This document shows positions 2,988 to 32,372 of a DNA stretch of 64,000 nt, piece after piece. The notes below the pieces were generated by a model. It was not told the origin of the DNA. It saw only the letters and a list, made by a program, of their open reading frames with translations, and made no database searches. Both the position numbers and the translations under genes were made by a program. The first letter of the stretch is position 1. Each line of letters starts with the position of its first letter. Source of the stretch: Styela clava (lineage: Eukaryota); assembly GCF_964204865.1 (NCBI RefSeq), contig NC_135256.1, positions 5,642,001 through 5,706,000 of the forward strand, read 5' to 3'.

Positions 2988-5900
2988 ATGGCAGACGATA
3001 AGACCGATGAAACGATCGATGTAATTTCCACAGCATCTTCCGGAGAAAAAGTTGAAGATAACGAAAAAGAAAATTGTGAGTCCAACAACATACCAGTAGT
3101 CTAATGTTTATTGTCAAAAAATGTCAATTCTGGTGTCTTATAAGAACAATTTCCCATTTTTTTTAAAAACGGGAAAATATACCGGCAGCGTATCCGTACC
3201 GTACTTTTCCTAAGTTTAGACTTTAGAATATTACGATACGTACATCCTACGACTGCTGATTACCTACGTAAGCTTCGAAAATTAGGGGGGGGGGGGGAGA
3301 GGGGGAGTGGTTGGCTCCAATCCAATATTCTACCAAACATGATGTTAATATAGTCTAAGTGCACGCATTTTTCTCAGTTAGAATGAACATCTACATCTTT
3401 TGGCAACATTCTCTTATTTACACTGTGTACGTTTAATTTCTTTATCTTACTCGAGGTTATGTTTCATGATTCTATAATCAGTTTGTATTTGCTTTAGTTT
3501 ATCGATTTATTTTATTGGCGTCATTGCTGATAATGGAGTTCAAATAAACCTATACACATTATTTCTAGCATCTAAAGTGAAGACTCCAATTGATCCAACA
3601 GAAAAATTGATGATTGTATTCAGCTGTTCTGTTATTCTTGTCGTCATCATTTTTGTTGTTGTTCTAGTTACGAATGGTAAGAAAGTTAACGTTTGATCAA
3701 CTTACGGTAAGTTTGTTCAGAACCGGCCACGGCACCTCTGATTACCCCACGAGGGTTCGCAGGTTCGAATCAGATGTGAGAATAGTTATGGGCGAGAGGA
3801 TTGCTGGACCTGCCGCCGTAGGGTGGTTCATGTAAACACTGGGCGGTTACGGCACTCTCCACTATCAAGTCCATGCATCTGAAAACAAATAACTAACTAA
3901 CTCCATACCCAACTTGGGCTGGTAACCAGACAAAATGCTCCGGTATGCCATATCATTAAGGCGTCTTATCGCTTTTCTCTCCCCTGGGACAAATATGTAA
4001 ATCTTATCGAACCTATCCTATCCTAACCAAGCATGAGTACTAAACCTTGTTTGGATTTAATCTGAAATGTTAAATGGAGTGAACGTCATTCTCCCTCAAA
4101 GATGGTTTGAATTTACATGAACTGCTTTGAATCTTGCGTCAAACAGTATTGACAAACGTGTGATTCTAAACTGTTATGAATTATGTGGTCCCAGTAGCTT
4201 TTGACACATGATTGTTCGCATGTTTCTTCACCTAGATATTTGCTTTTTTCTATAAAAAGTATCTCTCAGTTTAAATGTTCTCGGGTAATGTTTTGTTAGA
4301 GTATCCAGTTTGACAAGAGCCCACCAACCTACAAAGCATAAAAGGAAAAATAGCGATGCTGCTATCACATGTGTGTTAAAATGAAATTGTTCTCAATTTA
4401 TTGTTCATAATAATTAACATAGAATAGACATCAAGAAAGATTAGAAAGTGACTGCTTCCTATTTTTTGAGCTATGAGAAAGTGTTCTTTCATTTTTTGTA
4501 CTTTTTATATAACTGATTATCTTTTGCAGGAATAAAAACAGCAGCGTTGAGAAGTGTTTGTGAAGAAATTGAATCGAGAAAAAATACAGGAAAAAGTGCT
4601 GGAACGTCAGTCCAACAACCGTCTGTAGAAGATATTATGTTTTGTCAAAGTAAGCAAGTTCTAAGCTTCATCATCCAGAGTGTAATGTATCGGGTAGGCC
4701 GAACTCAGACATTTCACTAATTGAAAGATATTTCGCTGATCACAATACACTAATCATCAATAAAATTGATGATAAACAATGAAAGTTGTGAGCTTCGAAA
4801 TGAGCTTGGTCTGTGATGTAATCACTTATTAAAATTTTTATTTGGGATCTGCATGAGAAGCCGATAGGACAGCTTAATCCTATGGCGAACCACGGCCTCT
4901 TGTCCGGTTACCATTGCATCTTGGGGGCTCCCGAAGTATGCGAACCAAGATGGCGGACATCGGAATGTAATATGTGTACTAGGTAAGGGTTAGGCCATAA
5001 TTTTAGCTATAAATACTACGGGAGGCTCTTGGCTAGTCTTCGAACTGATAATAGGACAAAAATAAGAAAAATTGAAAAAAAATTATTGCCTAACCCTAAC
5101 CTGTTACCCATGTTACGTTCCGATGTCCGCCATCTTGGTTCGCATACTTCGGGAGCACCGCAGCTTGGGTATGGGATTAGATAGCCAGTTATTTATTTCA
5201 GATGCATGGACTTGATTCCGGTCCTTTCAGAAATAGGTTTTGTCACAAACAAGATTACGAAGTTTGAAGATTTATTTGACACATTTTTGTTATGGTATAA
5301 TTATGCATAAACCTGCTTATCCCTAAAACATATCACTTTTCTCTTCGATATATTTCGAGGATTCCAAGGCAAGAAAGAGTATTTCAATAAAATGTTATGT
5401 GTGTTTCAAAGTTGAAATAAATGTTGCCCTGCTGTCTTTATTATACAGATATTACAACTTCTGAACTTTTGGTGGAGTATTAATGAGCTTGGCAAGTTCA
5501 TTTAAAAAAGTGATTTTTTGGAAGTCCCTTTTGATCATTTTGAGTTGAAATTTCGACTATAAGCATTCACATAGGTCTATGTGTTTCAAAGAATTTCCAT
5601 CTTACATTATTTTTTTCAGGTATAAAGTGCAAATTTGATGTTCTGAATTGTAAAGTGCCTTGTCCTTTTGGATTCCAAGTAGATTCAGATGGTTGTGCCA
5701 CTGGTTGCCAATGCGGAGGAAGAGGAATATTGCAAGGAGATATCGCATTTGATGAAGCAGATGTTCCAGTCATGATGGATGTGAGACATCTTTTATTTTT
5801 TTATATAGAAGTTGATTCGATACAAATAATTGTTAATCATGAAGAATAAATGCACGGCTGTTTTTAGTACATTGTTTCCCTGAAAATAAGACTGGGTCCT

Positions 5901-8900
5901 ATTTTAATTCTGTATAGAAAAATGACACTAGGGCTTTTTTGGGGGGTGTCTTATAGTAAAATCATTTTTAAAATTCAGAGCAGGTCTTATTTTCAGGCTA
6001 GGTCTTATTTTCGAGGAAACACGGTAGTTTGTAGTACAGATGGAAAATCAGAGGCAGGCATAGCCAAAGCCTTTTCATATAAATTAACAAAAGAGCAATG
6101 CTCAAGGTTCTAAAATGGTACCAATACTGTCATGTAGGGGTTGCGTAGACCATAGGTTCTCAAAGTGCTCCGTACGGAGCCCCAGGGCTCCGCGAGAGAA
6201 AACCAGGGGCTCCGCGAACTATTCGATTACTTTTCAGAATACTGACTTGGCTAATTTTGTAACTGTTCAAAGAATCAATGACAGCTTTGATAAAATTTGA
6301 CAACAATATAGCCTCGAAATATGGCAAAGTGGCGGAATTAAAATGATATTATTTATAAGCAGGAGCGCAGCCAGGATTTTTAAGAGGGAGGAGATTCACC
6401 ATTGGAATCCGAAATTTCCGCGCAACATTCTTTGCGATTAAAAAAAAACGGATAACGAGATTTCTGTTGCGTAAAATATTCAATTCATGACCGATGCGAC
6501 CATTTGAAGTGTCTTGTCGCAATAATTTAATTGTGCTCATCGTTACTCACGTTCGAGACTACTATTAGGATTACTGAAATGAAAAAATACTATTGTAAAA
6601 TAACATAAACTGCGTGATAAACTGCCAACTATAAATAAATTGGAGTCTTATTTTTGCGATCTTGGGATTTGTTAAATTTGATTTGTTCTTTCGCACTCGA
6701 GATTATTTTTAAGCAAGATATCGCCGTTTGAAAAATCACAAGGTCTTGGCAAAATTTATTTTGGTGCATGCGGCTCCGTCGGTAGTTTCAGAATGGAAAA
6801 ATGATACATCGTGCGCATAATTAATTGACTGTGTTTCAATTTCGCAGTCACTACGATGAATAACCGAAGAAAACCTAACATAACACCAAATTTTGTGATT
6901 TACAATGTCTATTAAAGCGTTTTTATTCTAATGTGAGTCTGCTGAAACAAAACTTATAGTGTTATCTTTCATTTTAAGTTTTAGTTCTAATATTTTAGAA
7001 CGCCGCTTTTCAATCAAGAAATTTGAATTGCGGACCTCTTTACTAACTATTATTTTGTAGTATTTCGTCGCCGATGATTATATTATGGTAACATGTTTTT
7101 CACATTGAACTCATAATTCCCCACGAGAACGAAAAAGCATTTGTCGTCGTCATTGTGGAACAATACATGTATATGCCGAGGGAAATTTTTGATTTAGGAA
7201 GAATAAACACCGGCGTAAAGATGTTTGAGGTTTAAAAACACGCCATGCTGACGAAAACAATCGGCGATTGTAACAAAATGCAATCGCGCACGTTATTAGA
7301 GGCCTTTTAAGTCTTCCAAAAATGTCAAGAGGGGAAAAGATTAGACCCCTAATTTACAGCCTTAATATATACAATTTATCTTTGAAATTTAGATTTATTC
7401 ATGACTTGTATTAACCCTATTGAAAGGGTATAGTATTTAAATTGAGTTAAAGTTATATTAATCGGAAAGTAACAATTTTAACGTTTATTTTGGGGCTCCG
7501 TGAATGATAGTCAACCTTTCCAAAGGCTCCTCAGCACCAAAAGTTTGAGATCCCCTGGCGTAGACAGTTTTTCGAGAGGGCATGAAGCTTATTAAAAATA
7601 AATATATTTGTTGGATTTGATCTTGCCTGCCTCATTCTGCATATTTACATTTCAAATCATTCGATTTATTTCAATATCAACGTTCCATCCACGTATTTTC
7701 AACATGCTTTTGGAATGAAACATACTATCGCCTTACCATCTGTTTGTTACTTGTTGCTTAGTGAAATATCTGGTCCCATATAACTCATACGTAATTTGAA
7801 AATAAAATGAAAGTAATAGTCTTTTAGCGACTTTACTGGAATTTAGTGAGACTTTGACACTTAGTTGAATGGGACAAACATCAAACTATTCCTCAAAATC
7901 GAACCAGCTGACACTGATCTAACTAACATTCAAAAATTGAGTAACTTTAACTGAAATTTCCATATAGCCCGACAATCGACATTTCGACCAGAATAATTGA
8001 CAATTTACTCATATCTCATATTTAAATGAAATCTTATGTCATGAGTGCGCGTAACAATCTTTGATTTGCACTCAAATTTTGTACAAAAAAAAGTTTTTGT
8101 TCCTAGGAATTTGGTCTATCCAATGAGCGACAGGATTTTAATATTGAAGGACAAGATGTAGGAATTCCATTGTGGACACGAGACAAATTTGAAGGAGAGG
8201 AAAATCACCTGACTATTGCCTATAACTTGGATGCTGATTTAAGTATGTTATTTCAGTATTTGTTTTTTTGTTGAGTGTTTTCATTCAGAACAATGCTATA
8301 CATAGGCAACCAGTGATATGTATATATATATATATAAGCCTATACTATTTTTGAAGCATTCATCACACCTTATGTGAGGTGGCAGGCATGAAAATTGAAT
8401 TTGAGAACAGTAACCTGCTATGCAAACATAGTTTTTTCCAACAAGTAAACAATCGGGCAATTGCACCATTTTATTAAAATTGTTGGAGCTTGATTGAAAC
8501 TCTCAAATGACCATTTGCGCTGTTGGGACGAATGGGACTTGAGTCACATTTATTTGAAGATTTAGCTCGACCTGAGTCAAAGAAGGTCGCTTATCCCAAG
8601 TCTTTACTTCTTCCAATTGCCTTGATTGAATATCTTTTGGCATGACCTCAGGCCAGGTGAACTGATATTTCAACCTGGGCTGCTCCAATCATAATTTCAC
8701 TGGTGATTGTTTGCTAGAGAGAGAGAGAGAGAGAGATTTAATATCTTGTCATTTAAAAAGAATATAGTCATCAATGCAGTTAAAAAGATACCGCAATAGA
8801 ATGTCGATGTTACCAAAAATCTCAAACTCAACCATATTCTTGAAAGATTTAATCATTTTATGCCAAATCTAAACAACGCCAGACAAAAAGTAATTTCGCG

Positions 8901-11900
8901 TCACAACGCACAGTTTAGGAACCACTGGTTTACACATTTGATTACAAGCTTTCATTTTCCATCACAGCTGAAGAACAAATCTCTTCATGGAAACGAGCTA
9001 TTGGACAACTTGAGAAGGAAACTTGCATCAGATTTAAAGATCGGAAACATGAAGAATTGGATTATTTATTTGTAACAAAAACAGAATCCCCTGATTGCAC
9101 GTAGGTAGATTTTATTCTGGAATTCTTCTCTGTGAAGAGTACGCTTTCACTCTTTCTTCAACAAAAGGCTGTAGCTCGCCATATATTTGATTAAACTGTC
9201 TTATTAGCTTTCCTCTACAGATGCCTTGTCAGCAGTTGGCGCATTGTTCCTAATCATTAGAAATATGCTTGCCATCACACTACTGATGACCCTTCGTGAG
9301 GTTCGAATTCTACATAGGATACTTATATGCGAAAGGATTGCTGGTCTCCTCATGGCTGTAGGGGGGTTCACGTTCCCTGAAAATCCCACGCTGTTAGTTA
9401 TAAACAAGAAATCTATTTAATAATGCACCATCTCAGATGTAAAGCTTTCTGTCTCTATATTTTAACAGATCCTTCATTGGACGCAAGGGAGGTCAACAAA
9501 AGATAGTGATGGGCGATTGTTTCTCATCTCGACATGTAGAACACATGCTCATGCATGCTTTAGGATTTCAACATGAACATGCAAGACATGACAGAGAAGC
9601 TTATATTGAGATTAAATTGGATAATGTAATGGCAGGTTGGTGCTGATTATAATTGTGGATGTCGTTGTCTGGTGTTCAAACCAGGGGTGGGCAAGGTATT
9701 TAAACCAGGTGCCAAAAATGTTGCCGACCCAGACTGGCGGGCCATGAAAGTCTGACATAAAAAAGTTACATTTCATGAACAATATTTTCAGGGTTACAAA
9801 AGCAAGAGTAGAAAACAATAAGCCTTGTGCCAAAAGTAAATTTATTCGCAATTTAAACAAATTCCTTGAGCTATTTTTTTGCTAATGCATCAAAATTTGA
9901 TTTTAGTTTGGCTGTGGCGGGCCAGATTGAATTACCAAACGAGCCAATTTGCCCCGTGTGCCGTAGTTTGACCCTGTCAGGGTTAAATAATAAGATTTAT
10001 TCTTAAGACTTCAACTCAAGTTTAAACTCCCGAGTTTAAATCCCATGCCACCTCACCAAGGGTGTAATAAATTCGCAATGCCAAAACGAGAAGATTGTGG
10101 TTTTTACAAACTAAACTACAATAAAACTTAAATGGCATTGGCTACCGTACTTGTTTCGAAGTGAGAGGCATATAAATACATAGTATAGAATCAATTTTAA
10201 GAAAATATGAATGCTAACAATATTGGGGCCAAGTGATAATATCAGTTCAGGCAGTGGCACAAGCTTGGACAAAGCCTGATTATTGTAATTGACCGTCTGA
10301 CTGTTTGTCATTGTTACAATTCGGTTACTTCCTCGAACATTTAAAGCATTGAAGCAGAGAAAAACAAATAATCCACAATAATATTGAATACATTCTACAA
10401 TAATATTTTGAATATGGAATATTGATAATATTCTAAATTGTGTCATTTCAACTAACAAAAGTTAAACCATATTCAACAAGTTAAACTTTGAAAATGCAGA
10501 AATGAATGTGAGAGTTACAGCATAGCCTATAGCAGTGGTTCCTAACCGAGAGCAGTTGGAGGGGGCCATTATGCCATGCGCAAAACTGCCGTGGGTGTTT
10601 TCATTTTGTTGAGCATGAATTGTTTGAACATAATGGGATTTGAAATCTACCAATCAAATTAACAATATAAATATTTCTGGAATGATAAATAAGGGGGCCA
10701 TGAGTGCTAAAAGCAAGTCTACTATTTCAGAACACAAGGACAAGTTCAATGCAGTTTCTAAAGATCGTACAGAACCATACACAACAGATTTTGACAAAGA
10801 TAGTGTCACGATGTTCAGTGGATATGCCTACTCAATAGCAGAAGACAAACCAACGATTATTGATCTCGAAACATCACAACCTCTAGTTGTTTCAGATCAC
10901 GGCTTGTTCTCTGAGAACGATGTGTTGGATATCAATGGTCTCTACTGCAAAGGAATCGATCCTGAATCTGCTGGTAAATAAGAATTTTTTATAATAATTT
11001 AGAAAGAAGGAATATACATGTTGTGACAGTTATTTATTATTACCAAAATTAATGGCTTTGAGAAACTAAAAACACATCTTAGCCTAAACACAAGAACATG
11101 CAACATAATTACAGTCACTCAGTATAGCCAAACTCAAATGGACCACCGTCTAATACTCATAACAGCAGTGATACGGATGCAATCCATTGTCGCTTGACAA
11201 TAATCAGTGAATTAATTCTCATAACAATATATTATGATAATTATGATAAATACACTAAACCAGCGGTTCCCAAACTATGGGTCGCGACCCACTGGTGAGT
11301 CGCAAGAGGAATTTCAGTGGGTCGTGAAAAGATGTAGAAAGCTTTGATCAATTATACTGGTGATTAGGATCGGTGGCAAAGCAAATTTAAAAGCTAATTT
11401 CGAAATAAACTGCAACTTTTCAATTTTTTACGTCTAAAACTATCTGAAATTGAAATAAATGTCAAGTCTATTATGGAAAATAGCAAGAAACAATCTCATC
11501 TTTCTCACTAGCTTCACTGAAAATTCAATTTGAGAAATTAAATTTGTTTCCTCCATCAATGTTTTACTAATTTATTAAAGTTAAATGGGTCGCCATAAGC
11601 TGTGGTAAAAAATAGTGGGTACCAACTCTAAAAAGTTTGGGAACCACTGCACTAAACCAATAACTACTCGGTAAGTAAGTCCAGAAAGATAACTGTAATC
11701 ACAATAAAGGAATAAAATTAGAAGAGCTAATTACTTTCAATGATTCAAATTCAAGATTCAATTTCATATTTTTCTGACTCATATCTTTTGATTCCTTCTC
11801 ATTCATGGCTTCAAGTTCATTTTCAAGTTCTTTATTATTATAATATCTAAATATTGTAATTGTAACTGAGACAGAAATTGGAGTTACAGGTGCAAAGTTT

Positions 11901-14900
11901 CAATTCAAAGTTTAATGTGGCGATTGTTTATATGCGGAATCAAAGCATACTCATTGTGCATATTTGGCCCAGCAGTACATAATGTTTACCTGTTGATCAC
12001 TTGTGTAAACTATTATTTTGTATTTACATAAAGTTTTTCATTCTGTATTAATTATTCAGAAATGGAAATTGTGGAACAAGAGACTGTGTTGGGAAACAAT
12101 ACAGACGAAATTATGGAAACAATGGTCAGGTCTGCTCATCAAGTTCAGGGTAAGCATAGGATAGCAAGTGTATTCCTATTTCTCAGCACAATGCGGCATA
12201 CTGCCGACTTCTGATCCTTCTTAGTAGAGTGATGTCTGGTAGAGATAAAATTCAGTAAGATGGCCAAATCATATTGCTGTCCCAGGTCTTTTGTCTAATT
12301 ACAAGTCCAGGTCAGCAATAGTTACCCAATTGTGCATTCATTGTATACAGATACTTGAAGCAGTATATTCTTTTCTGCGTTTCTCAATATTATTTGCATA
12401 AAGTAGAAAGAAGTTCTTTGGGCCCGCGTACAATGCAGCTTATTGTAGCAACACAACTTGTAGCTAATTTACAACATTTCATTTATGCTTTTTGCCTTGA
12501 ACAAGGCCAAAGTATCCAGTGATATCTGACAAGCTACTGTTTTTGGCCGAAAAACCGAAATTGCCTACCCAAAATATTACACCTTTGGTGAAGTGGTGGT
12601 GAGCATGGACTTTGAACCCACGATATATACTCTGCGATGCAAACAAAGTTTAGTCTAACGCTTTAACCACTTCAGCCACATACTAGTCCTCTAACCATTC
12701 TATTTTATCATTGTCCGTTCCAGCATTCTGGACAAATTGGGCGAGTTGGGGGAAATGTGACCACACCTGTGGACCGAGAGCAATTATGAGTCGATATCGT
12801 AAATGTAAAACAGAGAAAGGACATACAGTAGCAGGGATGTGCCGAGGTGGGAGTGTGATGACTCTTCCATGTAAAGATATTCCTTGTCCGATGAGAAGTT
12901 CTTTGAAGCCGAGATGGTCAAAGTGGTCAGATTGGTCTGAGTGTTCTGAAACGTGTGGCGGTGGAGCAACATTCAGGTGAACAAATTTGTCATTTTGCGC
13001 TATTACATTTTGTGGCGCTCCCGAAGTATGTGCACCAAGATGACGCACAACCTGAACCCCAACCTGGTACACATACTATGTTCAGGTTGTGCACCATCTT
13101 GGTGCTTATACTTCCGGAGCACCCATTTTGTACACATTGAACTTTTAGTTATTTTGTGAGAATAAGATTGGCGATCTGTTACACTGCTTGTTTTGATGGA
13201 CTCTAAATGGAACTCATGTTTGTGCATCTGAAACAAATAAATCGTAAACTATTTCTATACCCGACATTTCTAGTAACCAAATGAGATGCCGTGGTTTGCC
13301 ATACGCTTAAGTCGTTTAATCGGTTTTGCTAAATTGCTATTAATGTTAGGGTGAACAATAATGAGTGAACTGCGGATTTGAATATAAGTTAGATTTATTA
13401 CAAGGTTGCTATTATGATTGGTATAAAACATTAGGGAAATTGTTAAAGTAATCTTTGAATGGTGAATTCATGGTAAAATTGGTGGTTTGAACATTGGGGA
13501 TTCTTATGAAGGGCACCAACCCTTCCTGTGTTTTTAAGTTTCTAGTTTCTGTATTGTAATATGACCAACTTTGCATTTTTCTCAGATCTCGAGAATGTAG
13601 CAGAGGGAAATGCAGAGGAGATCATTATCAATATGAAATGTGCAATACAATGGAGTGTAGATCAAGTAGGTTTGCTTATCAAGGGGTGATTAGTTTTGCA
13701 CAGGGCAATGGAGAACAAAAAGTCTTTACCAAAGTCTAAATCAGTGGTACTCAAACGGTGGGGCGTGCCCCACAAGGGGGGGCGTAGACAATTTTTTAGG
13801 GGGCATGAAGCTAATTAAAAATAAAAATATTTGATTTGATCTTGCGCGCCTTATTTTGGATATTTACTTTTCTTCATTGTTCAGAAATTGCAATTCTATC
13901 CACAGATTTTCAACGTGTTTTTTGAACAAAACATACTTTCGCCTTACTATCTGTTATTTGTATCTTATTGTTAGCTAAATATTTTTGAGGTGGGGTGTGG
14001 GACATGGCAAATTTTAAAAGGGGGCGCGACCCAAGGAGTTTGAGAACCACCGGTCTAAATTATATTGATAGTACTACGGAATTTGAATGCAGCATCATTT
14101 TTTCATTAGCCATCTTCACTCCAAACAAGGCCATGTATAAGCAGCCAATGATGAGTAAGGTATCTTGTATACCTGTGTCAAAAAGGGACAGGCTCAGGAA
14201 TAAAAGTGGATGAAGTGAAATTGATTTAAAATCTTATGTTTTATTTCTTCTGTAATGGACCAAGATTTTTTTCAGTGCTCCAGAAGTGTGTGTACCAATA
14301 TGAGGGGAAATTAGTTTTGTTCGCCTACATCAAGTTGTGTAAAACTGTAAAGGGACTGAAACCTATGGGCAGGGGGTATATTCACTTGGCTAACACAGTC
14401 AGGCCCTGAACTCGCAATAGAATTAAAATAAGGAAAATCAGAGTAAAATTATGGCCCAACCTTAACCTGGTACATACACTACAGGAGTACAGTTTTTTTA
14501 GCAGAATAGAAAAAGAACGGCTTTTACTTTGACTCAATTAGCACTTCTTATTTGGCTATGGGATGCTATGCAAGACATCTTGATAACGTAGATATATCAA
14601 CATGCTGTTGTTAGTTGAGGCTTCCACTAGATTGTATTTCTCCCATAAAGCTATACCGTACATACCTGTACCTTAGGATGAGTGGAAATATAAATTATTC
14701 ATTCTGAAGTACTTTTCAAACGTCAGGCGAATTCAATAGATTTGATCCATGGAGTGATTGGAGTCAATGTTCAGTTGAATGTGGTGGTGGACTGAGATCT
14801 AGATTCAGAGAATGCAAAACAATTTCAAGAAAGAGATCTAGAGAATGTGGAGGAATCGTGGACGATGATGGAATACAGTCAGTCTAGAAAGTATTTTTAA

Positions 14901-17900
14901 CATGAACTATCTGATTTCAATATCAGTATTAGATTTTATTTTAAATAAAGTGCAGAATAGTGTAGTGAATCGAGTTGAGTGCTCGCTCCACTTGGCTGCT
15001 GGGAGTCTGGCATATTGAAACTCACTAACACGAAAGCAGTTGAGGGTTTTGAATTTTGAATCGATTTCTAGAGACAATATTGTTGTAAGTGGAAAGTCTA
15101 GGATAAGCTTGACATTGCTTGTTATGTCATTACAAAAGTTGATGTATGTTAGTATATGAACAAGAACAACGTATGCGCAGAAAGTTCAGGAAGGAACATT
15201 AAACCCAATCATATTACAGTGATAACTCAATAGTCGAGCGACTCGATACTCGAACAATTCGGTCGTCGACCGAAAAATTCTGGTGAAAAATGATGTGGTA
15301 CACGAATTCGGTGATCAAACACCCTAGCGCCGCCAATGTGAGATGACGTCTTTGCAAAACAAAAAAGGAATCCCATAGAGCCCTCAGTAATTCGCTTGAA
15401 CATTCAGTACTTATGCAAAAAAAAAAATTATAAATTCATCTCTATTATGTACGCATTTAAATAATTATTTTTTGTTTTGGTACATATTTATTTAATATTT
15501 TGGGTATTTTGGAATAAATTAAAATAATTACCATTGTTTCTCAAGGCAAAAAGGGTTTTGTTACTGAAACAAATCAGTAGTCGAACACCAATCCTGAACG
15601 GATTATGTCTGAGTACCGAGGTATCACGGTATTAACCTAATGATACATACGTGTCCATTATTAACATAAATATGGAAATAACTTTTTCATTCTTATTTAT
15701 TTTTAATATCAACTCTCCCTTAAATAGGATATCATTTCCATGAAAATGAATTGGCTTTTAAACTATCTTTCTTTTTGTTTATCGATGACCATCGTGCCAT
15801 GCATTTCACTTTTTCAGGTATCAATCTGAGGTTTGCTCTGATGTTCAATGTCCTTATGGTGAGTGTTGTTAATACTAATCCTCTCATCCAGTTACTAGTC
15901 CATGCAGGGTATGGGATTAGTTAACCAGTTATTCATTTCAGATGTAGGCTATGGCTTGACTTTTACAAATTGCAACTCCTGCATATCCTTCCAGTGTTGT
16001 CTATCGTTTGAAATTAGAAATATAAGGTGGACCTATTTCTATCTAAGATGGGGACAAAATGACTGGTTAGTAATTTTGCTTTATCATATTATAAGGTGCA
16101 ATCCCTGACAAATGGTTTGATAACTCAGCTATATCGAAGGCAATGGAAGAACCTGCTTGGTTTTTGAGATCAGAAAACCAGGTTAGTTATATTGAAACTC
16201 ATCAAATTCAACTCCTGATAATTTAAAAGCACTTATATGTTCTGACTGATCCTGGATTATGACCGTGGCAAATGTTGAATGCGAAGGGTAAAACCAGATA
16301 AGCATTTCGATTGTTAGATTCTGTAAGGTCATCAAAACTTGAGAATCAATGTAACTTTTTTTTAAACATGTTCGATTATTAGAATTGTTTTTGACATAAC
16401 AGCATTTTTATCATCTATTTACTTATTCTGCTATCCTTGAAAATTTTGTAAAATTTGAAGTTAAATTGTTCTATCATCAGATTGAAGTTAATATTCCTAT
16501 AATTGATGTATTATGTATCACATCAGAGGTTCTCAAACGTTTGGGCGGCTATGGAGCCCATGAAAACGTTGACTATTATTTACGAAGCCCCGCAAAATAT
16601 CTAAAAAAAAAAAGATTAATGTTCTTTAGTAAATTAAAATTACTTTATTTAATGACTCCGATGTATTTATTGCTTTTTTGGACAGTTACAAAATTAGCCA
16701 AGTCAGAATTTTAATAAGTAAACGGATAGCTCTCATAACCCCTAGGTTTCTCTCAAGAAGCCCTGGGGCTCCATATAGAGCATTTTGAGAACCTATTTAT
16801 TACATTATTTTGTCTAAAATATGGTCATATATTACGTGTAACGGCCTCAGTTGGACCGCACCATGTTCATTTTACTACAAACGACAAATATTTGTTTCAG
16901 CTTCCAGTATCAGTCTGTGAACCAGGATTGAAAACTCAGTGGTTGTTTGGAGATTTTAATGGAGATCGAAGGAGTGACATCTTGTGTAGGAATGAAGAAG
17001 GAGATGTGTAAGTATTTTGTTGATGTTTTCTTGGCGATATGGTGTATCATGCTAAGCCTTAGAGGAATAAGCTCGCCACAGCACCTCTGATTACTCTGCG
17101 AGGATTGCAGGTTTGAATCCCATTTAGTTATGTGCGAGAGTATTGCTGAACTCCTTGCCTCTGCAGGGTGGTTCACGTAACCACTGGTCGATTGCGGCTA
17201 CTTCCACCATCCTGTCCATGCTTCCGAAAACAAATAACTGACTGACTTATTCCATATCCGACATGGACGATAGATTGTGGTTCGCCATATGATTAAGCAG
17301 TCTTATCGGCTTCCCTCGCCCCGAGATGAATATGTGAATCGGGACAGTAGAGTCAAAGACAAGTTTCATCCAATTCCGACTTCAAGCCATTCAAAAAATG
17401 AGTCCCAGATAAGTGTTATCAAGAATTTTTTCTTCAACCCGGGTTCAGTTAAATCAATTCCGACACAAGCTCTAGTCAAACCTTCCTTCCTAGTGTCTAT
17501 TGAAATTTCAAAGTGAGCTTCTATTCAACTACATAAAGCATTCAGGCCCACAATATCTATTCGATAATTATGGAAATCAAAGTTGATTGTGGAAATGGAA
17601 CTGCTTAAAAAAAATTCATTTGCGGCATAAAATATTCAGATTGTAAGCAATGCCTCACGTCTCTGACATTCTGCAATCTAAGTCTAATCTTCGCTTTCGT
17701 TGAAGGTTTAAAAACGTTATTTTTCTAGAGATAGGAAGACCCTGCGAAGTTCCGGGACTGTATGTGTGAGCCAATAGAATATACCCCCTCACCTGTCCAT
17801 AGGCTTCAGTCCCTTTACACAACTTGATGTAAAGTAGGCGAACAAAATTAGTTATATCCATATTGGTAAACATACTTCTGGAGTGCCAATAAAATTATTC

Positions 17901-18697
17901 ATAGAGTCTTGTAGATAGAGATGCAGTCTTGTACTTTCAACATATTTAGAATCATGTTGTTCAACCAAACTGTAATAATATTGATAACTAATCATTGTTA
18001 TTTCAGAAAGATAGTACTAGCCGGCCGAGGCAACAGACTTGATAAAATATCTTGGGAAGGGAAGTTACATAATTGCATTTTAAAAAGTTTACACACTGGA
18101 GATTTTGATGGAGATGGAACAACTGATGTCCTATGTGTTGCAGTAGATGGTGTCGAAACGTAAGTGGTGTCTTGGATTAAAGATGAAATTCCATTTATTC
18201 ATTGTGAAATGTTGACCACAGTCCCACGCCTGGTTATTGATCCTGTGGTGGTAGAGAATAGGTCAGTGGCTCCCAACCTTTAGGCTAGGAGAGGATTTAC
18301 ATATTTAGGTTGTGAAACACTGAAATAGATCACAACCCATTTTATACTGGAAGCAGGACGAGATATAATTATGATCACACCTTATTTTGTGTCCTTATGT
18401 GTTAAGTTTTTTAAATTCTCCCAACACACAAATGAATGATAATTTTGGAAGAATTGAAAAAGAACATTATTTATGTCTCTCAAATAAAAAACTTTTTTCA
18501 GAGACATGATACTCTTCCCAATTCGACGTGGAGAACCCAAAGATCCGGTGATGATCGGCAATCTTTGTGTTGATAGTAATTGGAAAGTTTACGTCGTTGA
18601 TGCAAACGGAGATGGAAAAGATGATATTTTATGTCGAGATGAAACAGTCGAACCAAAGAAATTTTCAAAGATTCATTTAAATATTTACGAAATCTAA
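2988..18697 (+). CDS. Type II membrane astacin-like (M12A) pseudo-metalloprotease with antistasin-like, 3x TSP1 and 3x FG-GAP/VCBS-like repeats; 17 exons, 770 aa
   Basis: Exons: 2988-3075, 3569-3676 (TM, LMIVFSCSVILVVIIFVVVLV), 4530-4649, 5620-5780 (CKVPCPFGFQVDSDGCATGCQC and QGDI), 8107-8242, 8968-9100 (ETCIRF), 9469-9635 (HMLMHALGFQHEHARHDREAY), 10731-10973 (DSVTMF...INGLYC), 12060-12149, 12724-12976, 13586-13665, 14727-14877, 15818-15858 (TSP1 WxxWxxWxxCxxxCGGG), 16096-16181, 16901-17007, 18007-18159, 18502-18697 (GDFNGD/GDFDGDG/DANGDG). All introns are GT-AG with compatible phases. The total of 2313 nt is an uninterrupted ORF ending in TAA. Confidence 0.9.
3721..4026 (+). mobile_element. 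tRNA-derived SINE, 5'-truncated diverged copy
   Basis: Box B-like GGTTCGAATC, a body similar to the 18953-19293 copy, and an (ATCCT)n-type tail. Confidence 0.75.
4924..5159. mobile_element. Merlin-like palindromic MITE (subfamily A), inserted into a SINE
   Basis: Near-perfect TIRs of about 50 bp (GGgGCTCCCGAAGTATGCGAACCAAGATGGCGGACATCGGAA). TSD GCATCTTG/GCAGCTTG (8 bp, 1 mismatch). Both flanks are contiguous SINE sequence. Confidence 0.85.
5870..6024. mobile_element. Tc1/pogo-like MITE
   Basis: Imperfect inverted termini TA-CAtTGTTTCCcTGAAAATAAGAC ... GTCTTATTTTCGAGGAAACACGG-TA. Confidence 0.6.
6151..7557. mobile_element. Non-autonomous hAT-like element nested in another hAT MITE
   Basis: Termini CATAGGTTCTCAAA...TTTGAGATCCCCTG. 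Perfect 8-bp TSD GCGTAGAC (6143-6150 and 7558-7565). The flanks match the interior of the 13742-14052 family. Confidence 0.8.
11261..11649. mobile_element. hAT-like MITE
   Basis: TIR CAGCGGTTCCCAAACT/AGTTTGGGAACCACTG; perfect 8-bp TSD CACTAAAC. Confidence 0.85.
13014..13123. mobile_element. Short (110 bp) palindromic Merlin-like MITE
   Basis: Termini GGCGCTCCCGAAGTAT...ATACTTCCGGAGCACC; perfect 8-bp TSD CATTTTGT. Confidence 0.85.
13742..14052. mobile_element. hAT-like MITE
   Basis: TIR CAGTGGTACTCAAAC/GTTTGAGAACCACCG; perfect 8-bp TSD GTCTAAAT. Related fragments lie at ~7560-7770 and ~63565-63680. Confidence 0.85.
14274..14491. mobile_element. Merlin-like MITE, subfamily B
   Basis: Aligns by eye with 36117-36330 (CATCAAGTTGTGTAAA..GGGACTGAAACCTATGGGCAGGGGTATATTCACTTGGCTAACAC). 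Confidence 0.7.
17033..17339 (+). mobile_element. tRNA-derived SINE, diverged copy
   Basis: Same head (GCACCTCTGATTACTCTGCG..GGTTTGAATCCC) and body as the 18953-19293 copy. Confidence 0.75.
17745..17887. mobile_element. Partial Merlin-like MITE subfamily B, reverse orientation
   Basis: Reverse complement of the 36117 element's first ~140 bp, ending ...ACATACTTCTGGAGTGCC. Confidence 0.65.

Positions 18698-21791: not shown

Positions 21792-32372
<10,581 letters not shown>

Follow-up and report, generated by a model that had tools for sequence, protein, structure and literature searches.

Pseudopeptidases are well documented among the ADAMs and the carboxypeptidases, and the dead ADAMs act via protein-protein interactions (PMC11266112). 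In the astacins, a 2023 review describes the Glu of the zinc motif as the general base/acid, and a prosegment Asp as the residue that substitutes for the catalytic water in the zymogens. The word 'inactive' is not used in that review, which does not discuss inactive members, and a 2024 review of inactive metallopeptidase homologues (PMC11266112) lists no astacin; the literature that we searched held nothing specific on Glu-less astacin homologues, astacin pseudoenzymes or the astacins of Styela clava. Here we describe LOC120328125, a gene of Styela clava located in a 64,000-nucleotide window (contig NC_135256.1, positions 5,642,001 to 5,706,000; G000:C8:5642001-5706000 in our genome coordinates). 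The gene spans 2988-18697 on the + strand of the window, and its protein (770 amino acids; XP_039250464.2, P0001 in our searches) consists, in order, of an N-terminal membrane anchor, an antistasin-like module, an astacin prosegment, an astacin domain, three TSP1 repeats and three FG-GAP-like repeats. We consider it likely that the astacin domain is a conserved and expressed but dead pseudopeptidase, serving as a zymogen-like, latched zinc module within a type II mosaic.

The astacin zymogens of known structure (proastacin, 3LQ0; promeprin beta, 4GWM; the LAST-MAM zymogen, 8A28) provide the first point of comparison; as modeled, P0001 shares their fold and, like them, would pass its prosegment through the cleft. 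Both have an Asp of the FxGD type, three zinc-binding His, the family Glu and two disulfides. Unlike the zymogens, P0001 has Met in place of the base Glu, Phe in place of the Tyr ligand, Thr in place of the Met-turn Met and no obvious activation site, and its prosegment is tethered on the N-terminal side to the antistasin-like module and the anchor and cannot simply leave.

Active-site residues lost and retained

The zinc-site helix is encoded in exon 7 (9469-9635, + strand), in which positions 9542-9580 translate as HMLMHALGFQHEH. The codon for the first His (CAC, 9542-9544) is followed by ATG (9545-9547) at the position where astacins carry Glu. The original prediction, made from the sequence of the window alone, had called this substitution and put it at two or more base changes; direct reading of the codons agrees, with two changes required to convert GAA or GAG to ATG. 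The zinc motif of the protein therefore reads HMLMHALGFQHE rather than HExxHxxGxxHE, with Met275 in the position of the general base. Exon 8 (10731-10973, + strand) encodes the Met-turn region, where KDSVTMF is translated from 10796-10816 and DSVTMF (10799-10816) stands where SxMHY is expected; the Ser codon (AGT, 10802-10804) and the Phe codon (TTC, ending at 10816) lie exactly where the prediction had placed them. SVTMF aligns column for column with the SIMHY of other astacins (Met to Thr, His to Met, Tyr to Phe), with Thr replacing the Met of the Met-turn and Phe replacing the Tyr that serves as the fifth zinc ligand.

The rest of the site is kept, as had been claimed: the zinc-binding His residues (H274, H278 and H284), the family Glu (E285), the RHDREAY segment (R288, D290, R291 and Y294) and four Cys residues, C224 (TCIRF), C248 (DCTS), C266 (GDC) and C377 (LYC). 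The Cys residues align with the family Cys columns, indicating from the alignment that both astacin disulfide pairs are retained, and all five dead relatives examined have the three His. In the prosegment, LQGDIAF (with D146) aligns with the FEGDI of other astacins. We found no furin-type activation site in the prosegment-domain region of P0001, which upholds part of a further claim, that a basic activation site is missing. There is, however, a sole basic residue (R167), 15 residues ahead of Trp182, at a position occupied by Lys in the orthologue described below (P0151) and by no basic residue in the tandem paralogue.

LOC120328125 encodes a member of the astacin family (MEROPS M12A, PF01400) by homology and predicted fold. 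The Astacin profile matches P0001 over residues 194-378 (profile positions 5-189 of 189; 135 bits, E 3e-39), and among the separate exons it matches exon 7 (E 2.5e-15), exon 8 (E 2.4e-6) and, on the open frame, exon 6 with TCIRF (22.4 bits, E 1e-4), the last at 0.1 bit below the Pfam cutoff. Judged by its residues, the protein lacks the motif Glu and SxMHY, both of which are hallmarks of active astacins. In crayfish astacin, replacement of the Glu reportedly abolishes activity, and a change of the Tyr to Phe is said to lower it strongly. The domain is thus predicted to be catalytically inactive, while binding of zinc by the retained ligands is plausible.

Sequence accuracy and expression

The substitutions are not assembly errors, nor do they reflect decay of the gene. 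A DNA contig (X2 record 13) spans 9447-9841 with 0 differences from the window, and an older RefSeq version of the protein (XP_039250464.1, P0178) carries the same motifs; it differs from P0001 at nine residues, none of them within either motif. Four of the nine cluster in exon 6 (T223S, D229E, K231S and E244G, T223 being the Thr of TCIRF), and the differences between the two versions suggest high allelic diversity in Styela clava. Neither of the two variant bases listed in exon 6 (9011 T>A, 9059 G>A) alters the encoded amino acid.

The prediction had treated 9542-10816 as one intact open reading frame. This stretch is not a single frame, since it spans the end of exon 7, an intron at 9636-10730 and part of exon 8; what is intact is the frame across all 17 exons. 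LOC120328125 is expressed and spliced. In a contig of 1719 nucleotides (X10 record 7), 9469-9632 runs straight on to 10728-10973; the letters CAG are shared and make the exact joint ambiguous, and the contig is compatible with a canonical junction at 9635|10731. It begins 78 nucleotides upstream of exon 7 and extends for more than 1200 nucleotides beyond exon 8. Two other records (X5 record 16 and X10 record 1) match exon 4 (5620-5780) from end to end within longer sequences, X5 record 23 reaches the exon 8 donor (10973) and then continues, and the exon 5 bin has RNA depth in both X10 and X5. X5 and X10 come from two different studies, and while the RNA nature of the runs is guessed, their contigs must represent transcripts because genomic DNA cannot yield spliced contigs. 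In a run from a related organism (X9), the one listed piece touching exon 7 covers 9378-9502 and ends before the ATG codon.

An orthologue and the constraint on the domain

A word search with P0001 recovered a protein of 867 amino acids (P0151) on a Logan contig of 2754 nucleotides, which is 62% identical to P0001 over 98% of its length. When P0151 is compared with the Styela clava genome, its best matches are the exons of LOC120328125, at 52-78% identity, and nothing matches better. We take P0151 to be the orthologue from another species because the Styela clava genome does not encode it and its best matches there are these exons. The same low identities oppose the idea that it is a contaminating copy from Styela clava itself. 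HMLMHALGFQHEH and DFDKDSVTMFSG are unchanged in P0151, as is TEHMLMHALGFQHEH in the alignment of the two proteins, so that HMLMH and SVTMF, whose conservation in related species had been put forward as a check on the prediction, are found exactly.

Identity between P0001 and P0151 varies by region, with 72% in the astacin domain, 74% in the prosegment, 63% in the TSP1 repeats, 60% in the FG-GAP-like repeats, 35% in the N-terminal tail and 19% in the linker at residues 379-415. For this pair, the astacin domain differs from the N-terminal tail and the 379-415 linker taken together with a Fisher p of ~1e-11, and its 72% identity, set against that of the tail and linker, marks it as one of the protein's most constrained regions. 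Further word searches with P0001 and with alignment A2 yielded no more orthologues, adding only TSP1 proteins and P0167, a bacterial-type active astacin with FG-GAP repeats. A word search with exon 7 by itself, restricted to proteins of 31-98 amino acids, had no matches. P0151 also has ~94 additional N-terminal residues (within residues 1-95) in its cytoplasmic tail; they are rich in Lys, Ser and Asp, consist of near-repeats resembling KSSKTKDD and are absent from P0001.

A missing catalytic residue, expression and conservation across species, by which pseudoenzymes are recognized, are all found for LOC120328125. With the intact frame, the spliced RNA, the motifs preserved in P0151, the constraint on the domain and the predicted astacin fold, the data support the view, already taken in the prediction, that it encodes a pseudoenzyme and is not a pseudogene. 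A neutrally decaying copy or a sequencing or assembly artefact, which three altered active-site elements in a large and duplication-prone family might bring to mind, is hardly credible given the intact 17-exon frame, the spliced RNA, the agreement of two protein versions and a DNA contig, and the identical motifs in a protein only 62% identical overall, with a domain whose conservation far exceeds that of the tail and the 379-415 linker.

Glu-less relatives in the Styela clava genome

A profile scan of the genome (377 Mb) with Astacin recovered ~45 zinc-site exons, nearly all of which encode HExxH; four lack the Glu. Besides LOC120328125, one of these belongs to a tandem paralogue at C8:5608700-5619530 (loci L044, L040 and L031), which lies 30 kb upstream of the window. 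Its exons follow the order of those of LOC120328125 (anchor, antistasin-like module, prosegment with MQLDVQF, astacin, TSP1, FG-GAP-like), to which they are 31-51% identical, and a homologue of exon 5 is present. The zinc site reads HILMHSLGFHHEH (HILMH) and the Met-turn region SIMTL. An orthologue of this paralogue (P0149, 745 amino acids) is 56-89% identical to it exon by exon, has HVLMH and GIMSL, and matches the same Pfam families as the LOC120328125 protein with the exception of Antistasin. A third relative, on the minus strand at C2:17663000-17671000 (loci L038, L043 and L047), has an anchor, an antistasin-like module and FQGDLQI, with HMIYH...LGFQHEH and SLVHL as its motifs; here the astacin part is followed by long mucin-like repeats rich in Pro, Ser and Gly and by TSP1, and an extra intron splits the zinc-site helix. 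The fourth Glu-less gene (L026; C5:7318432-7321575, minus strand) reads HQIMHALGFWHKQ (HQIMH...HKQ), with Lys in place of the family Glu and SLMHF at the Met-turn.

A tree built from astacin domains recovers P0001 and P0151 as a pair with support of 100/99, and a clade of these two with P0149 at 95/88. Across the three paralogues the Glu position holds Met, Ile/Val and Met, the Tyr position Phe, Leu and Leu, and the Met of the Met-turn is Thr, Met and Val, respectively. The changed residues are conserved, or nearly so, inside each orthologous pair. No variation is seen among these three paralogues and the two orthologues in the zinc-binding His, the family Glu, RxDR, the four Cys or the Asp of the prosegment. 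The simplest reading is that catalysis was lost once, long ago, before the tandem duplication and the species split, and that purifying selection has since acted on a new role. We do not propose a pan-ascidian family of dead astacins, as the Clavelina protein discussed below and P0059, both without the Glu, fall outside the P0001 clade in the tree.

Active paralogues also lack furin-type sites, leaving no contrast in activation sites between dead and active members; the absence of such a site is therefore not diagnostic. At four other loci with an intact HExxH (L020, L022, L027 and L032) the Met-turns are unusual (SVMQG, SIIHF, SLMQY and SVMQY, respectively), with variation at the Tyr ligand or next to it even in Styela clava astacins that are presumably active.

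Architecture and predicted structure

P0001 was found as the 100% identical match of a profile search with exon 7, under the source name 'uncharacterized protein LOC120328125 [Styela clava]'. Searches were conducted with single exons first and with this database protein afterwards, in place of a spliced model joined by us, and the 17 exons were mapped one by one onto the window, with AG/GT flanks. Exon 2 (3569-3678, ±2 nucleotides) encodes the sole hydrophobic segment (residues ~44-66), which acts as the N-terminal signal anchor; it is preceded by a charged tail and is a helix in the structural model (residues 39-85). P0001 is probably a membrane-anchored protein of type II, with all disulfide-rich domains C-terminal to the anchor, because every cysteine-rich extracellular domain follows this single segment. 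Exon 4 (5620-5780) encodes the antistasin-like module (residues 107-138; PF02822, E 2e-7 for the exon) and then the prosegment motif ILQGDIAF with D146, the candidate for the Asp switch. Exon 5 (8107-8242) completes the prosegment, including R167 as the one basic residue, and opens the astacin domain (IPLW ... TIAYNLD), and exon 6 (8968-9100) continues the domain through TCIRF (C224) and PDC (C248). Downstream of exons 7 and 8, which carry RHDREAY and LYC, respectively, exons 9-12 (12060-14878, ±2 nucleotides) encode a poorly conserved linker and three TSP1 repeats (PF00090, PF19028 and PF22195), and exons 13-17 (15818-18697, ±2 nucleotides) a linker and three FG-GAP-like repeats (GDFNGD...C; PF13517 and PF01839), up to a TAA stop at 18695-18697. 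All lie on the + strand. On the whole protein, Pfam reports Antistasin (residues 114-137), three TSP1 and FG-GAP-like repeats alongside Astacin.

An AlphaFold2 model of P0001 was built from a 50-sequence alignment. Confidence (predicted local distance difference test, pLDDT) is ~88-97 over residues 190-378 and 91 over residues 141-150, and low in the antistasin part, the linkers and TSP1. The astacin fold is predicted, with Z scores of 23-24 and root-mean-square deviations (rmsd) of 1.9-2.8 Å over ~190-209 residues against hatching enzymes, astacin, BMP1 and the meprins. Fish hatching enzymes are the top Foldseek matches (3vtg: TM 0.88, rmsd 1.7 Å), while in VIA-align the highest score goes to the known structure of an astacin zymogen (8a28_B: Z 24.4 over 208 residues, model residues 140-380); mature hatching enzymes (3lqb and 3vtg) are within 1 Z of it and thus tied, and the promeprins and proastacin (3lq0, Z 23.4) score about the same. 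Only with zymogens do the alignments begin at model residue 140, whereas those with mature enzymes start at 175-177; for 3lq0, model residues 140-382 align with chain residues 15P-200. The model therefore puts the prosegment, with high confidence, in the cleft as in the zymogens. By simple counting D146 corresponds to proastacin position 21P, which we take to be the aspartate-switch residue (Asp21P). Further along, model residues 605-770 align at Z 13.5 with approximately three blades of a lectin propeller from Psathyrella velutina.

Proposed role and alternatives

We propose that the astacin domain of LOC120328125 still binds zinc and that its own uncleaved prosegment stays in the cleft with Asp146 on the metal, which would amount to a permanent zymogen-like latch. 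The domain might then serve as a rigid scaffold or binding unit, displaying the TSP1 and FG-GAP-like parts on the cell surface, towards the matrix, in a role like that of the ectodomains of dead ADAMs, neither cutting nor trapping substrates. The cleft may be permanently self-occupied because the prosegment is as conserved as the domain, is modeled in the cleft and forms the sole link between anchor and domain.

Several points weigh against this proposal. We infer the inactivity, the zinc content and the continued presence of the prosegment, and AlphaFold tends to reproduce learned, zymogen-like poses. The basic residue in the prosegment-domain linker (R167; Lys in P0151) leaves cleavage and shedding possible. 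The RNA contig carries three variant bases in exon 7 and eight in exon 8, which were counted without their positions. Finally, the tree was constructed without the active Styela clava paralogues, so that a single loss event is not proven.

The best of the alternatives, though still an unlikely one, is that the domain is an open-cleft, zinc-binding trap or decoy, from which another protease removes the prosegment; the inactive cleft would then capture, without cutting them, the substrates or inhibitors of active astacins. Conservation does extend to the zinc ligands and the residues that form the cleft, a basic residue (R167 or Lys) lies between prosegment and domain in both orthologues, and the genome contains active paralogues with antistasin-like-module matches in adjoining exons. 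A trap needs an open cleft, however, and therefore cleavage of the prosegment and shedding, as this cleavage would set the entire ectodomain free of the membrane anchor; conservation of the prosegment equals that of the domain, the model places this segment in the cleft, the basic residue is absent from the tandem paralogue, and a furin-type site is lacking. The original prediction had favoured substrate trapping; with a 74% conserved prosegment that carries D146, is modeled in the cleft and alone links anchor to domain, we find no support for that part of it.

A more speculative and rather unlikely extension of the latched-module proposal is that the dead membrane astacins pair with active, membrane-anchored paralogues of similar architecture. 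Three-blade FG-GAP-like halves from the two partners could form one propeller, and the latched dead subunit could regulate or target the active one, by analogy with iRhoms and ADAM17 or with pseudokinases and kinases. If this were true, it would be the first regulatory pseudo-astacin, and a tunicate-specific one.

Residual peptidase activity, by way of another general base (e.g., Glu273, which precedes position 275 by one helical turn) or of a bound partner, is very improbable. Glu273 (VEHMLMH) is kept in P0151 (TEHMLMH) and all of the metal-binding residues of the HxxxHxxGxxH helix are intact, but a Glu occurs at the same position in ordinary HExxH paralogues (L002, L003 and L021), the tandem paralogue and P0149 have Leu there, the Tyr ligand is lost as well, and the motif Glu is recognized as the general base/acid in astacins.

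Repeats and neighbouring sequence

The introns of the window at 5900-7860, 9640-10030, 10425-10714 and 11213-11400 contain high-copy interspersed repeats; two of these stretches (~9640-10030 and ~10425-10714) lie within intron 7 (9636-10730, + strand, GT..AG), and the end of one repeat is only ~15 nucleotides upstream of the exon 8 acceptor. Contig depth over the intronic repeats is hundreds to thousands of times that over exons in every run, including that of related organism B. Downstream of LOC120328125, an open frame on the + strand (21792-21950) resembles what we take to be the N-terminus of RuvB-like 1 (pontin), and the next gene is presumably RUVBL1.

Comparison with known pseudopeptidases and astacins

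A small tunicate clade appears to have lost the general base, the Tyr ligand and the Met-turn Met while keeping the zinc-binding His and the latency Asp under constraint. It offers a natural system for asking what use a metzincin fold and its metal site have once catalysis is gone, and whether a zymogen-like latch can turn into a lasting structural state. For annotation, about one in ten of the sampled Styela clava astacin genes lacks the catalytic Glu and should not be counted as a protease.

Within Styela clava, the active, membrane-anchored astacin paralogues L016, L017, L022 and L028 (C9:6.73-6.80 Mb) and L006 (C4:17.27 Mb) have HExxH, unlike P0001. They resemble P0001 in their surroundings: exons matching the antistasin-like module and prosegment adjoin L016, L017, L022 and L006, and TSP1 exons adjoin L006. 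Their Met-turns read SVMHY (L017), SIMHY (L006) and SIIHF (L022), compared with SVTMF in P0001.

Glu-less astacins are not new to the databases. An 'astacin-like metalloprotease toxin 5' of Clavelina lepadiformis (HLLMH) resembles P0001 in having a hydrophobic residue for the Glu with the three His kept, but it retains SIMHY and falls outside the P0001 clade. The Glu is likewise replaced by a hydrophobic residue, with the His kept, in the second domains of proteins from Manduca sexta (HIFVH) and the tardigrade Paramacrobiotus (HLVLH) and in a protein of the jellyfish Sanderia (HLLLH). All of these proteins, that of Clavelina included, differ from P0001 in architecture.

The pseudopeptidase ADAMs of family M12B (ADAM11, ADAM22, ADAM23 and unc-71) are like P0001 in being membrane-anchored, with an extracellular metzincin domain that has lost catalysis. 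They differ in belonging to another subfamily and in being of type I rather than type II, and P0001 has no reprolysin or disintegrin domain, Pfam giving only Astacin, Antistasin, TSP1 and FG-GAP families. Of the dead ADAMs listed in Table 2 of PMC11266112, most lack at least one zinc-binding His (ADAM7 and ADAM29 have the full set of three) and every one retains the Met of the Met-turn; P0001 has all three His but an altered Met-turn. Taken together, the data support classification of LOC120328125 as a metzincin pseudopeptidase of the astacin subfamily, embedded in an unusual type II mosaic.

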